This document shows, one piece after another, positions 43,484 through 51,352 of a stretch of DNA of 64,000 bases. The position numbers and the translations under genes were made by a program. Source of the stretch: Dimorphilus gyrociliatus (taxonomy: Eukaryota > Animalia > Annelida); contig CAJFCJ010000013.1 of the NCBI GenBank assembly GCA_904063045.1, forward strand, positions 62,001-126,000. The letters run 5' to 3'. The notes under the pieces are model-generated. The model searched no databases, was not told where the DNA came from, and saw only the letters and a list, made by a program, of their open reading frames with translations. The stretch's first letter is position 1. Each line of letters starts with the position of its first letter.

Positions 43484-46253
43484 TCACTTAGGGCAAGTTC
43501 GGGAAGGTAGACGCTTGAAATGAAAGTCGTACTCTGTAAAATCTATGCCCATACGGTCTTGAGATAAATCACAAGTGTTATTCATAAGTTTAGAAGAAAT
43601 TCGAAAGGTATAAATTGTGTCATTAAAGTAGCCTGCAGGGAGACTCCAGATATCCTTTAAATATTGCAAACGATATAGTAAAATTATAGCATCTAATTAA
43701 TTTCAAACAATTATTTTTAATTACCTGTCTCAGTTCATCTCTGAAAGGTAAATGCTGTAGTTGAGTACCTTCACAATCGGTTTCTGTATCCGCTCCTGTA
43801 CCCTGAGAATAGTGGCACAACCAACTTACCGATACACTTGCATTATTTAATCTAAATTAACAAAAAATGAATTGTTATGTGTATCCAATAATTAAAAGAA
43901 AGAAAAGAGAGTATTTCTTACTTAAGATTGACGATAATATTTCTAAACTGAATAGTTTTATCTAATTTAATTAAGTAGCGATAGCGTCCATCGGAGCCAG
44001 TGCACGAGTTTCTTAGACAAAACGGTGCCAATGATCTATTATAAGTTATAAAGTAGGGATCGGCCATAATATGGCGAATATTTTCGTTCGTCTCTATATG
44101 CGTTTTCCCTCTATCAGGCATTTTTGCCATGGTAAAAGCCATTGTGGTGAACTTTGACGTTCTAAAATTGCTCTCTTCGCGTATGACATTAGCGCTTTGG
44201 ATATGACTTTTATTTCCCGATCTAGAACTGGATGATAGACAGCATTTCTAAAGAAAGTTAAAATCAATATTATAAGATGATGGAAAATAAAAAGCCAACA
44301 AAATTACCTCGTCGCAAACATTTATTCTACAAAACGATCTTATAAGAACATCAGGGGGGATAGGAGTAGGCTTTACAGTTCCTCTAGTAACTGCTGGCGT
44401 TCCAGGTCTAGTAATAATTGTAGGTATGGGGCTGAAATAATTATAGAAAATTCGCAAATTAAACATGACAGTTTTTTTTTATTTATTTAGAATTTTAGCT
44501 TACCTGGTACCTTTCTTCTCCGTCTTTTCTAATATATACAAGGTTAAAATGGATATTAAACTGAAAAAGAAGAGAAATATTCAAATCTAAATATTAATAT
44601 ACAACGTATATAACTTACCATAGCGTCATTACAAAGACTAGAGTAACGATAGCCGAATGTAATAATCTATTAGAGCATTGTGTATCTTCGGGTTGTGATG
44701 GTTTCTTTGATCTACGAGTGTTTTTGAATGAATTCGCTCTATTCAATTTATTCTGATTCGGCCGTCTAGCTCTACTTCCTTCCGAACCTAAAACTGGTGA
44801 GCTGATAACTGATGACGTTGTCGATCTAACACTATCTCTTTTCTGTTTTAATCTTTCATTAAATGTTTCTATTTGTACAATTCTAGTTTGTAGATTATCA
44901 GCAACTTTACATAACTCTTGAACAGCTCCTAAACCTTCCATGTAAAGACGATCTTTATTGACAGTTTGAAAATTTTCTACAACTTCTCCATTTGTCAATT
45001 TGACATCTCCGGCCGGATGAACAGCTTCTGGTATAACGGTTTTTACCTGTTGGGCAAGGACACCTGTTGTTTGCCTCTCCTGAGCTTCCATGCCAACGGC
45101 GTCGGCGTAATCGTCTTTATACGAAAAATTGTACATTTTTACTTTTTTTACTTTTTCAAGCTGTTCTGACGAATCAACTTCCTTAATATTCTCTTTGACA
45201 CGCATATCAGACGGTTGTAATATGGCTCCCGTAACTCTAATATCTCCTTGGACGTCTAAGGCTTTTTCTGGCTTATCGGTTTTAATACCGACATTTCCAC
45301 TTGAATAAACACTTTCACTTCCCTGAACTTTTTGCCACGGATCAACATCTTGCTTGAATTGGGAGGGATTCGACGCTCTTACAATGATCTTCTCCGATTG
45401 CATAGAACATATTGTCCACTCATTACCGCTTAGAGTGTGAGCCTTTAATGCAACATTTAATAGGAAATAGCGTTGGTCAGGATTAGGTTTCCCGTTCTTT
45501 CTTTGATTATTCAACGTCGTGTCGCAAAAATGTAATCTACCGATCGTACAACCCTTTCCAGCCGTACCGCTATTGCTAAACTCGATACTGTACGAATATA
45601 AAAAAGTGATGTCTAAGAAAATTAGAATTATTTCGAGAGAGCAACAACAATCAATAATTAACAACAAATACTTACATTTGTGGAACAAATGGCTTTTTTG
45701 TTCGATCCGATTGGGATTGTTCCACTTGCACAGTTTGTTGTTTAGCTTCTCGCTTATTCCCGTAAATATGAATGTGAAACGATCGTATTTCTTCATAGTT
45801 ATTTTGATTAGTAGCCACGAACTTGGGATAATAACTATTATTAGCTAGATGAACAGTTACTTGAAAATGATTCTTCTTTTGACAAATAAACGAATCGTCA
45901 GGTGCCGAAAAGATAAAACCTTTATCGGCTTCAACAGAAAAATTCACATGTGGTCTTTGTTGTAAAGGGAAAAAAAATAATCATTTTCTTAATGAAATTT
46001 TCTTTGATTCTATTTTTTAAAATAATATTTACAGTGCATTTCCTCCACTGTCGTATAAAACGTAGAATTTTTCATCATGATTTACATAAAACTTGAGGGA
46101 ATTTTGACCGCTATCCGAATCGGCAGATTGACAATGATTTGGTGTATCTCTTTCGCATTTAACCAATGAAGATTGTTGAAGATTTTCATCAATTTTCCTC
46201 TTTTTTGTTTTCTGGCCCTCTTCTTGTCTTCTATTAATATTTAAATAGAGTTA

Positions 46254-47197: not shown

Positions 47198-48944
47198 TCA
47201 TAATTTATCTCGAATATATTTTTAACATGCTCTTCCTACCGTATCTTATTATCTCTCGGTAAATTTTCTCTTTTTTATAATTATCATCCAAAATATCAAA
47301 AGAGATTAACAATAAATAAGTAGAAGGAGAAAGTAGAGGAGAAAAACACAAATGAAAATATTCACTATTCTCAGATGGGACCTGTTAATACTGAGTCATA
47401 TCCTTCAAGTGAACGTTCAATTTCTTATCAGACGTTAATATCGATAAGATACAAGGGAAAGTTTTTATTATTGTATGAAGTATAGATATTAATTTTTAAG
47501 AAAAGAATTAGAGTAAATGTATAAAAATAAACTATAATGTGTTACTGCATGTTTATAATATTATAAGTATTAATTAACCATATGTATACTGTATATAGAC
47601 AGTAATCTAAAAAGATCAGAATTTTTTAACGATAAAAAGGGATCGTACAAATTTTATACATATCTTATGTTATTCTCAGATTATGATTTATTTTTTATCA
47701 ACTTGACAAAAATTTACATTCCTTAGGATTTTAAAAGGGCAAAGTAGGACACCGTTGAGCCATCTATAGGCTAATTTTTATCAGTGAGAATTTTTTTTCA
47801 TGCTTTTCGACTGAAAGCGGTGGTCCGATTACTTTTTTTATATAGTTATTCAGGATATAATTATTAGTTAAGAATCGGTGAGATAATGTAAATAAGTCTT
47901 TTTTGTTTTTTTTTTTTAAAAAAAAATTTTATAATTACCCATCGGATCCAAGACAATACTCTTCAAGAGCATTAACGTCCAAATTATCGAAGTTGCATTC
48001 ATCTATTATGAAAAAAGACGGAATCGTAAGAAAACATATATAAATATAGCTAGATTCACCCTATAAAGTTGGTCAATTGTAATTCGCTGAATAGGACAAC
48101 TTGTACCGACCGGTACTATAGAGCTTATATATCAGTTTTTCGGGGGGGAAGGGGGAATAATTTTTAGTTCGCGAAAAGATCGTAAAATCTTTATTAATCT
48201 TTCGTCTTCTTGACCTTAGACATACCAATATAAAAAAAACAAATGCCGATAGTAGTAGATAAATATTACACGTAAAATTACGTACAAACAAGATAAATAG
48301 AACGAATTTTTGGAACTGAATGAAAATGAAGCACTTTTTGTATTTTAACGTCAAACTTACTTAAAATATTATTCAAATTTTTAGTAACGATATCATCCTG
48401 AACTATCGACGTCATCACGCTAATAGATCCATTCAAATAATACCAAATCCAATAAAATTAACGATTAAAAACATTATACTTTTCAGACAAAACAATCAGC
48501 TCTTCCGTTTATGCCTTACTCCTCATTTTGGTAACTTTTTTACAAATCACATAAACCAAATCTTTAATTTCAATATTCTTTATTAAATAATTTATTAATA
48601 ATCCTCCAAGCGTTTTAATTTGTCAATTTTCTAAAATTTTGTGTATTACGTCTTACTTCTTCGCAGGTTGTTGACAATTTTACTACTTAAAACGCCACCT
48701 ATTAATGAATCATCATAGTACTCATTAGTTTCTTTTTTATTCCGAAAGAAATTTAAAAGAACATTTTAAAACGGTTTAATAAAACATTCTAAAAATATAG
48801 TTTAAAGAAGAATCTACGGGAAAAAATAATATTATTTGAAATCTGTTAAAATATCTAAATTTTGTAAGGAATACATAGACTTTTCAAAGGAAAAGAAATA
48901 TGCTAGAGTTTTTTTTTGTTAAAAAAAAAAGAAATAAAGAACAT

Positions 48945-49733
48945 TTATTGTTCTTCTTCTAAATTGCGTTTTTTTAATAATTTGGAATTTTCTTCAACCA
49001 ATTTAATAGCTGCATCGCCATGATAAACTGCATGTGAACCCAACTGTCCTCGAAAGATCAGAACAATTGCTGCTCGAATATCTTCAACAGTCATAGTTTT
49101 TCGCTGTTTAAGTGATTTTAAGTCTCTTGCTTCCATTGCAACACGATGAAATATACTTTTAAGAATTTCGTCTAAGATTGCAAGAGCTTCACTAGAAATA
49201 CCCATATCCGGATGTAACGTTTTCAAGGTTTTCTTTATACTCGATCGGAAATTTACATCGTTCAAGTGAAGGTAACGCTTAGGTTTCTTACTCTTGGATT
49301 TTGACGTTTCAGCTTTAGTTTTAGCCATTCTCTTATTTACTTTTTTTGTAATTTTTTTTCTCGGCGACGTTGTCTTTACCGTCTCTGGGGATATTTCTGA
49401 TGTATTCTCGTCTATCGTAGGTAAGATGTTGATATTGCAAAGTGTATTTCTGACCGGAAAGACTATAGTTTCTCTTCTTTGCTTTCCAGTCACGGTAGCT
49501 ATATTAATCTTTTCCAAAACTGGCTTTATATTATCTTCCTCTTTACCACCAATTGCCCCCAAGGCTTCCAATTCATTGCCGCTGGAGTTGGACGAATCAG
49601 ACAATAAGATAACTTCGCTTGCAGAACTATCGCATAAACACTCACAATCCAAAGATGACGAACAACTGCATTCGCATGCTGAACAATGAGTGTAGCTAAC
49701 GGAAGTTTCATGTATTTGCTGCGATTTCGACAT
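48945..49733 (-). CDS. Histone H2B-like variant, 262 aa, with a ~160-aa N-terminal extension; CDS is intronless
   Basis: Histone fold NFRSSIKKTLKTLHPDMGISSEALAILDEILKSIFHRVAMEARDL...TMTVEDIRAAIVLIFRGQLGSHAV aligns with H2B [24 protein letters not shown]...[24 protein letters not shown]. The ORF track start at 49757 is TTG; the first ATG is at 49733. Confidence 0.85.
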   Translation of the reverse strand: MSKSQQIHETSVSYTHCSACECSCSSSLDCECLCDSSASEVILLSDSSNSSGNELEALGAIGGKEEDNIKPVLEKINIATVTGKQRRETIVFPVRNTLCNINILPTIDENTSEISPETVKTTSPRKKITKKVNKRMAKTKAETSKSKSKKPKRYLHLNDVNFRSSIKKTLKTLHPDMGISSEALAILDEILKSIFHRVAMEARDLKSLKQRKTMTVEDIRAAIVLIFRGQLGSHAVYHGDAAIKLVEENSKLLKKRNLEEEQ

Positions 49734-50341
49734 TTTGGTAGCTAATGGAAAGGACAATCCAGATTGATCTATTCATATAACTACTCAACAATAGTAGTAC
49801 TCTTATGGAAAGTTTGGCGAAACATACATACTTAGAGGGGGGTGGGGGAAGTTTTAGAGAGAGAGGTGGGGGTGGGAGGTGATGGTGAAAAAGGGGGCGA
49901 TGAGAAAGAACTTTAAAAAGAAATAAAACTAAAAAAAAGAGGGGGGAGAGTAAATAAAGCAATTTTAAGTTTGTTAGGAAAAAGGAACAAAATGAATAAA
50001 CTACAAAGAGGATAAATAGTTTTAATAATTATAATAGAATATAATAATAATAATTAATAAAAAAAATGTATATTAATTAATAAGAAAAGGTCAGAAAAGA
50101 GAAAGAAAAATAAAACGTGTATGCGTATATGTATGTTGTATGCGTGTATAGGATGGTAAAGTAACGAGATATTGCGGCTAGAGATAGGCGCAAAGCATGC
50201 TATTTTTAGAAACGCCAAATAGGGTATGTGCTCCGCCACTCGGTGGCGTTGATTCTCTTATCCTGCTAGTAGCTTTGTTAAGTTTGTTTCGTTTGTAATA
50301 ATCTTTATCCGGATATGTTAAAAAATGTATAAAATGTACGT

Positions 50342-51352
50342 ATGACGGATTTTGATGCATGTAGATTTGATTTTCGATTGGTTGCCGGAGGCGAATTACA
50401 ACCGTCTAAGAGGAAGAAAGCATCTAGGCCGAAATGTGATGAGGATATATTATTAGAACATTGGAATTATAACGAAGAAAAGAGGCAATCGCCAATAACT
50501 GATGAAGTGGAGACAAAAAAGAGGAAGCTAGATTCGATTGCTAGTCGACTATGGAAGAGCAAGTTAAAGAAAAAGAAAAAGAAAAAGGAAGAAGAAGAAG
50601 TTGACGGAGAGTTTAAACCGATATCGAATGGAAAGATGACGGATGGTTTTATGTTTCATATGAAAATGCCTTCCAAACAGAGAAAGTTGACTAGAAATGA
50701 TTCAAAGAAAGAAGGTGATGAGGACGATTTAAAAATTTATATGCTGTCGCCCGAAAACTTTGAGAGCTCCAGCGAAAGCGAACTAATGGATCTACCTACG
50801 CAGGTACCACTCTCCTATCGATTCGATGCCGATACTAGGGAAGAAGGCGCCGAAGAGATGGAAGAGGATAGCGACGACATTGATGACGATGATAAGTACG
50901 TGTGTTCTATTTGCGGTAGCGTTCAACCATCCGAATGGCGTCTGCTACTCCATACCAGGGCCCATCAGGGACTTCATTCGAAATTGGCCAAGCTTTCCGA
51001 ACGTAGATCGAAAGGACAAGTTAGACGAAGGCCCCCAGAGCGAAACGTTACAAAATGCGACTACGAGGGATGTAATCTCAAGTTCGAAAACACAAGACAA
51101 CTAAAACTTCATCAATGGTGGCATATGGGTTACAAACCATTAGCTTGTTCACTTTGCGATTATGTCTGCAGTCAAAGAAACTCTATGAATTGGCACATGA
51201 AGAACAAGCACGGCCTAGATAAGGTGTTAACTGCTCATAAAAGAACGGCTTACGTTGGGGCCGATGGTGTTTTAGTGAGCGCAAAGACAACTTTTGCTCC
51301 TCCAGCCGTCGAATCTGTCTTAGATCTACGAACACGAAAAGAAGAGTCGTAA
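50342..51352 (+). CDS. Intronless C2H2 zinc-finger protein (3 fingers; last two ZFP91/ZNF653-like)
   Basis: YVCSICG...HTRAH; CDYEGC...HQWWH; KPLACSLCDYVCSQRNSMNWHMKNKH (compare ZFP91 KPLQCEICGFTCRQKASLNWHMKKH); basic NLS-like runs. Confidence 0.85.
   Translation: MTDFDACRFDFRLVAGGELQPSKRKKASRPKCDEDILLEHWNYNEEKRQSPITDEVETKKRKLDSIASRLWKSKLKKKKKKKEEEEVDGEFKPISNGKMTDGFMFHMKMPSKQRKLTRNDSKKEGDEDDLKIYMLSPENFESSSESELMDLPTQVPLSYRFDADTREEGAEEMEEDSDDIDDDDKYVCSICGSVQPSEWRLLLHTRAHQGLHSKLAKLSERRSKGQVRRRPPERNVTKCDYEGCNLKFENTRQLKLHQWWHMGYKPLACSLCDYVCSQRNSMNWHMKNKHGLDKVLTAHKRTAYVGADGVLVSAKTTFAPPAVESVLDLRTRKEES

Follow-up and report, generated by a model that had tools for sequence, protein, structure and literature searches.

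A Divergent, Solitary H2B Variant Gene with a Long Acidic and Cysteine-Bearing Tail in the Annelid Dimorphilus gyrociliatus

Introduction

Does the annelid Dimorphilus gyrociliatus possess an H2B beyond those already listed for it, and, if so, what kind of histone would it be? In animals, to our knowledge, divergent variants of H2B are rare, and those found come mainly from mammals, sea urchins, and hydrozoans. The question is raised by an open reading frame on the minus strand of a 64,000-nucleotide stretch of contig CAJFCJ010000013.1 (the window), the predicted product of which ends in an H2B-like fold and begins with a long tail. A first-pass annotation, made from the letters of the window, had called it a novel H2B variant, and had proposed a germline or sperm histone that could bind zinc or cross-link through disulfides while escaping H2B ubiquitylation signaling. 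The published histone census of the species, compiled by protein-to-genome alignment together with transcript data, comprises 17 core histone genes, of which three encode H2B (two canonical genes and one "unknown variant"), and describes this complement as minimal and fully conserved (PMC12153100). The set ranks among the smallest known for histone genes.

Gene Structure and Reading Frame

The coding sequence, the features of which are collected in Table 1, starts with an ATG at 49733-49731 and ends with a TAA at 48947-48945 (minus strand); if it were read from an upstream TTG, the product would have 270 residues. The open frame is more than a chance event. The window is AT-rich (33% G+C), its base composition predicts stop codons at a frequency of 0.074 per codon, and the probability of an open run in this frame by chance is 9e-6 for 150 codons and 1.6e-9 for 262 codons. 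Within the tail region the coding frame contains no stops, as against 2-10 in each of the other five frames.

Table 1. Positions of Features of the H2B Variant Gene in the Window
Feature	Position	Strand	Description and basis
Possible 90-nt 5'-UTR intron	49742-49831	minus	Donor ctaa/gtatgt; acceptor tcctttccattag/, 8 nt before the ATG; read from the sequence
Complete coding sequence, no introns	48945-49733	minus	262 codons plus TAA stop; ORF list and sequence
Outer tail, residues 1-82	49488-49733	minus	Acidic, Ser-rich, predicted disordered; composition, AlphaFold2, gene-like codon use
Cys cluster, residues 17-34	49632-49685	minus	C-x2-C-x-C-x-C-x5-C-x-C-x-C; His16 just ahead; two CEC(S/L)C units
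VILLSDSS, residues 41-48	49590-49613	minus	Consensus of a SUMO-interacting motif: aliphatic core, then S-x-S plus acidic residues; sequence
Inner basic tail, residues 113-156	49266-49397	minus	SPRK (123-126) at 49356-49367; KSKSKKPKR aligns with the basic segment of the H2B tail immediately ahead of the fold
Internal ATG, Met136 (MAKTKAE...)	49326-49328	minus	AGAATGG context; a start here would give 127 aa, the canonical H2B length
Histone fold (alpha1 163-173, alpha2 181-209, alpha3 216-226)	49056-49247	minus	AlphaFold2 pLDDT 95-98; Foldseek; phmmer
C-terminal helix, residues 230-261	48951-49046	minus	Q230, H238, K244/L245, and a 12-residue extension (K251-Q262); alignment, AlphaFold2
AATAAA poly(A) signal	48944-48949	minus	Overlaps the stop codon; sequence

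Codon use, scored in frame with a table trained on the neighboring genes, amounts to +0.152 bits per codon in the tail and +0.138 in the fold; the neighboring genes themselves reach 0.13-0.21, and the flanking DNA scores between -0.16 and -0.47 in all frames. Because the frame of the tail is open and its codon score matches those of the fold and of the neighboring genes, unlike those of the flanks, both fold and tail look like selected, maintained coding sequence. In neutral simulations that started from the canonical gene and introduced no indels, the 127 codons were still free of stops in only six of 2000 runs (0.3%) at 42% fold identity.

The Histone Fold and Its Identity

The gene is derived from H2B and not from another histone-fold family. 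AlphaFold2 models residues 161-262 with a pLDDT of 92-98 in the layout alpha1, alpha2, alpha3, alphaC. A phmmer search of the PDB gave 179 matches (E <= 0.01), and the best 60 of these are all nucleosomal H2B, with E values for single-copy chains of 3e-17 to 3e-15; Foldseek likewise places only H2B chains, either nucleosomal or bound to H2A, among its 50 top matches to the fold (TM 0.85-0.91, rmsd 1.4-1.7 A). The first-pass annotation had named clustering with non-nucleosomal histone-fold proteins as an outcome that would speak against its reading. No such clustering appears: when the worm's own genome is searched with the variant fold, H2B is matched at E 1e-14, as against E 0.006 for an ORF resembling Dr1/NC2-beta, the only match in the genome that is not an H2B. 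This ORF (contig 28:138556-141741, ORF 1354-1725 minus, 123 aa), which is 26% H2B-like, was set aside as a candidate since by eye it looks like Dr1/NC2-beta.

As a reference for alignment we used the canonical H2B of D. gyrociliatus (127 aa, loci L003 and L004), the fold of which, over the aligned stretch shown, matches chain D of PDB 8ux1 (in our view Drosophila H2B). The variant fold is 38.8% identical to this reference (33/85 columns), with positives at 51 of the 85. Among 100 H2Bs, 64 columns are conserved in 80% or more of the sequences, and 29 of these are changed in the variant. Conserved positions that are kept include L170, H174-P175-D176, G178, S180-S181, A183, I186, F195, R197, A199, E201-A202, and L205, and, further along, T213, I219, A222, L225, G229, L231, H234-A235-V236, G239, and A242. 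S180-S181 and T213, together with R211, which is also kept, are loop residues with which H2B contacts DNA.

K120 is the H2B ubiquitylation site, and E105 and E113 form the H2B part of the acidic patch. None of the three is retained in the variant; Q230 occupies the column of E105, H238 that of E113, L245 that of K120, and K244 that of T119, so the alignment to the worm's canonical H2B upholds the substitutions first reported (E105Q, E113H, and K120L with a Lys one position earlier). The added C-terminal tail that had been described was also recovered, as 12 residues lying past the canonical end. Further changes affect K108 and K116, the alpha1 tyrosines (Y37F, Y40S, Y42K), and a series of positions (Y83L, R92E, E93D, Q95R, R99V) that, from established nucleosome structure, we take to be the face of alpha2/alpha3 meeting H4. 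Normal entry into the octamer is not assured, because conserved columns are changed, including these H4-facing positions and the start of alpha1 (Y40S, Y42K).

Pairing with H2A was modeled with ESMFold2, using residues 140-262 of the variant and residues 12-122 of the worm's canonical H2A. The score was 0.86 in three runs versus 0.00 for the best of three controls; it is a measure of likeness, not of binding, and may come from the model's memory of solved H2A-H2B complexes. Of 78 solved complexes, 51 attain the mark applied to such complex scores, as do two of 108 mismatched pairs. At least 90% of contacts are common to the runs, and the partner has a pLDDT of 81.

The N-Terminal Tail

The protein can be divided into five parts: the outer tail (residues 1-82), a brief linker of mixed composition, a basic tail (113-156), the H2B fold, and the C-terminal helix with its 12 additional residues. 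The first-pass annotation had put the tail at ~160 residues, and about 156-160 residues do precede the fold; only ~112 of them, however, stand before what is a normal-looking basic H2B tail. In an AlphaFold2 model built from a 101-sequence alignment, residues 1-156 are predicted to be disordered, and the outer tail has a pLDDT of 41-53 and no secondary structure. Its composition is strongly acidic (pI 4.05 for residues 1-60, which include 17 Ser, and pI 4.06 for residues 35-82).

The Cys-rich block noted in the first pass is present as described, with seven Cys in 18 residues (positions 17, 20, 22, 24, 30, 32, and 34). AlphaFold2 predicts no fold for the cluster. Runs of C-x-C and C-x-x-C, which are metallothionein-like features, occur in the variant, again with no predicted fold and with no relatives found. 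An origin of the cluster from a microsatellite was considered and set aside, as the coding sequence contains no tandem repeat at the DNA level. Relatives of the tail as a whole were not found in the ESM Atlas or by HMMER among 1.84 billion representatives; the structural rows of the ESM Atlas have TM values of 0.26 or less and are meaningless. A search of the genome revealed no second copy of the tail.

Downstream of the Cys cluster, and directly preceded by E40, lies the segment VILLSDSS, which resembles the Daxx sequence IIVLSDSD given as an example of the consensus for SUMO-interacting motifs (PMC8616421). The motif is degenerate, and we regard this segment as a candidate SUMO-interacting motif and as a lead only. 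Other elements of the tail named in the earlier description are also present, with RRET at residue 86, a single SPRK at 123, and a basic stretch before the fold (residues 113-150, pI 10.7). In this stretch and just beyond it, K147, K149, K150, and R153 are conserved by alignment to canonical H2B. Met136 is the only internal in-frame Met preceding the fold.

Relatives, Genome Copies, and the Published Census

An exhaustive HMMER search of 1.84 billion cluster representatives yielded 2411 matches, among which only the query itself fell below 1e-30; no ortholog was found in this collection, and no match covers the tail. The best of the other matches comprise predicted H2Bs in tandem or fused form, ordinary H2Bs, and long-tailed H2Bs from plants, at 30-44% identity and in the fold only, and the plant long-tailed H2Bs are among the better single-domain matches. 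Word-index protein searches with the whole variant and with the fold piece, a method blind to distant kin, returned only the variant itself or nothing, and a contig look-up by exact sequence gave no record. On these searches we read the variant as probably lineage-specific. As no ortholog was found, dN/dS is not measurable for this gene.

The genome search identified four H2B loci in D. gyrociliatus: two identical canonical genes, h2buv1, and the variant described here. Comparison with the census shows that its h2bc1 and h2bc2 peptides are identical to ORFs in L003 and L004, and that its sole H2B variant, h2buv1, is identical to an ORF in L002 (Table S6 of PMC12153100). The variant is not among the three H2B entries, a comparison that covered all 17 DgyrT entries, and its N-terminal and Met136 peptides do not occur in the part of the tables of that paper available to us (PMC12153100). 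It is uncatalogued as a histone, though a 262-residue model of identical sequence is already present in protein collections. The claim of a novel H2B variant therefore holds: the leading PDB and structural matches are all H2B, no ortholog was found, and the published census lacks it.

Canonical histone units were placed on scaffolds 2 and 29 by the census (PMC12153100); the identical canonical H2B peptides sit on contigs 14 and 29 of the assembly searched here.

No H4 variant was found in the genome, which contains only two identical H4 genes. A candidate for a partner H2A variant (contig 19:1828928-1832188, ORF 952-2070 minus, 372 aa, 37% identity) was rejected, since by eye it looks like the head of an SOS-type Ras exchange factor, in which a histone fold is followed by the apparent start of a DH domain.

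Transcript Type, Genomic Surroundings, and Expression

At the variant locus (L001) there is no match to the Rfam Histone3 stem-loop (RF00032) at E <= 1. The canonical genes in L003 and L004 are followed by Histone3 matches of 34-39 bits, located after H2B on contig 14 and after both H2B and H2A on contig 29. Because the stem-loop present at the canonical copies is missing and an AATAAA signal lies at the stop codon, the transcript is probably polyadenylated and of the replication-independent type. The paired genes h2buv1 and h2ac1 (L002, contig 2:1380540-1383932) also have no Rfam histone stem-loop at E <= 1.

The sequence ahead of the gene suggests an intron in the 5'-UTR with Met1 as the first start. 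Met1 would be the first ATG past the likely splice acceptor and has an A at -3, and the CT-rich stretch upstream of the putative intron holds no ATG. From this arrangement we infer that translation probably starts at Met1.

The gene is solitary and lies outside the histone clusters. Downstream of it is a large exon of a MYRF homolog (44615-45796 minus; PDB 7dc3, E 4.5e-50), and upstream is a gene for a 336-residue acidic/basic low-complexity protein that ends in C2H2 zinc fingers (50342-51352 plus). The C2H2 gene is transcribed divergently from the variant, with ~600 bp between the two start codons, and it is possible that the two share a promoter region.

A hint of expression, and a weak one, comes from sequencing runs. 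Sampled words from a 1.3-kb stretch containing the variant are present to 83% in a run of unstated type from 2017 with only 60 million letters, and to 13% in a coral metatranscriptome. The share of 83% would be explained more easily by RNA than by genome coverage of less than 1x, which would hint at transcription of the gene.

Comparison with Known H2B Variants

In its architecture the variant is nearest to mammalian H2B.W and also resembles plant H2B.8, with orthology to neither. Like the worm variant, H2B.W (H2BW1/H2BW2) has a fold less than 50% identical to replication-coupled H2B, lengthened tails at the N- and C-terminus, and an N-terminal tail that cannot be aligned to canonical H2B, and it is single-copy and lineage-restricted (PMC8857922). 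In contrast, H2B.W is reported to keep most of the residues that contact H2A and H4 as well as the modification sites (PMC8857922), many of which are changed in the worm variant. The two differ further in that the mammalian protein has no Cys cluster and no acidic outer tail, whereas the annelid variant has both.

H2B.8 of flowering plants, in other respects a nucleosomal H2B, likewise has a long disordered stretch in its N-terminal tail and is of the replication-independent type, as the worm variant probably is. The disordered insert in the tail of H2B.8 drives condensation of sperm chromatin, and the protein acts in sperm and seed by phase separation (PMC9668745). However, H2B.8 belongs to another kingdom, its fold is near canonical, and its tail is unrelated to that of the worm variant.

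The first-pass annotation had also likened the protein to sea-urchin sperm H2B on account of its SPKK-type motif. Both the worm variant and the spH2Bs of sea urchins and hydrozoans have an extended N-terminus with an S-P-basic-basic motif. The tails of spH2Bs are strongly basic and contain many repeats of SPK(K/R) (PMC9903204). The worm variant has a single SP[KR][KR] motif (SPRK) and no array, its outer 82 residues are acidic, and its fold is far more divergent, so the likeness does not hold up.

Mammalian H2B.L (subH2B) and H2B.N share with the worm variant a highly divergent fold in which the alphaC/acidic-patch region is lost or changed. Non-nucleosomal roles have been discussed for H2B.L and suggested for H2B.N, which is reported to have no alphaC (PMC8857922); in the worm variant, by contrast, alphaC is kept and lengthened. 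Within the same genome, h2buv1 resembles the variant in having no recognizable 3' stem-loop. It is otherwise quite different, being 93% identical to canonical H2B, 127 residues long, and part of a histone unit on scaffold 2, whereas the variant is 39% identical in the fold, 262 residues long, and solitary.

Alternative Explanations

The explanation that we prefer is a functional, lineage-restricted H2B variant gene of D. gyrociliatus, solitary, with an intronless coding sequence, probably polyadenylated and replication-independent; we judge its chances of being correct to be about even. An unlikely alternative is that the protein keeps the H2B fold, may bind H2A, and works outside nucleosomes in a structural, storage, or chaperone-like capacity. 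A precedent for such a non-nucleosomal H2B exists in mammalian H2B.L/subH2B, which is found in the sperm perinuclear theca. The number of conserved columns that are changed, which include the acidic-patch glutamates, the ubiquitylation Lys, and (by our own mapping) the H4-facing residues, would fit this role, as would the fact that no H4 variant is there to compensate and that no histone tail that binds chromatin looks like this long acidic, Cys-rich one; H2B variants of this kind are discussed in the literature (PMC8857922). The retention of the basic segment before the fold and of the DNA-touching loop residues argues against it, as does the confidence with which the H2A interface is modeled.

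Translation might instead yield the short form only, a 127-residue H2B with an ordinary basic tail beginning at Met136, with the 135 codons upstream serving as a transcribed leader or lying in untranscribed DNA; the first-pass annotation had itself named such a start as an outcome that would speak against its reading. In favor of this are the context of the start, which is strong (A at -3 and G at +4), a length exactly that of canonical H2B, and a tail for which the searches found no relatives; yet we consider it unlikely, given that the 135 upstream codons are free of stops (a probability of ~3e-5 by composition), that they equal the fold in how gene-like their codon use is, with all other frames closed, and that a scanning ribosome would use Met1 if the transcript begins upstream. 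A decaying or silent copy, the frame of which is open by chance, would account for a solitary position far from the histone clusters and for a very divergent sequence with no ortholog that was missed by a census using transcript data. We hold this to be highly improbable, because even without indels neutral drift rarely leaves the frame open, the tail is also open and codon-biased, many of the positions conserved in H2B are retained, and the modeled fold has a pLDDT above 92; the words shared with the 2017 run, for which RNA would be the easier explanation, point the same way.

Proposed Role and Significance

If the gene is a functional H2B variant, as we prefer to read it, the models suggest that its fold still pairs with ordinary worm H2A, so that it would take the place of H2B in the dimer with H2A and probably in the nucleosome. 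In nucleosomes containing the variant, the acidic patch would be weakened (E105Q, E113H) and the H2B ubiquitylation position would be without a Lys, so that they may escape H2B ubiquitylation. Their H4-facing surface would also be altered (Y83L, R92E, Q95R, R99V). The projecting helix and the long flexible tail may provide protein contacts or mediate self-association. If other strongly diverged H2B variants are a guide, the likeliest setting would be germ cells or early embryos, and a germline or sperm histone, as the first-pass annotation had proposed, would be in keeping with this.

More speculatively, and with what we consider a slim chance, the outer tail may serve a germline histone as a regulatory leader. 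Some protamine precursors carry acidic leaders, and the dwarf male of D. gyrociliatus measures 50 micrometres. The acidic, Cys-rich segment might mask the basic histone in cis until deposition or cleavage, or, in dwarf-male sperm, it might use zinc or disulfides to cross-link neighboring nucleosomes. Either of these, if true, would mean a protamine-like locking role for a histone in an animal with a minimal histone complement.

The presence of an extra, strongly remodeled H2B alters the published picture of a minimal and conserved histone set in D. gyrociliatus. If the variant is expressed in germ cells, it would offer a tractable example, in a spiralian, of histone turnover in the germline, and a natural test of a nucleosome that has neither the H2B half of the acidic patch nor H2B ubiquitylation.
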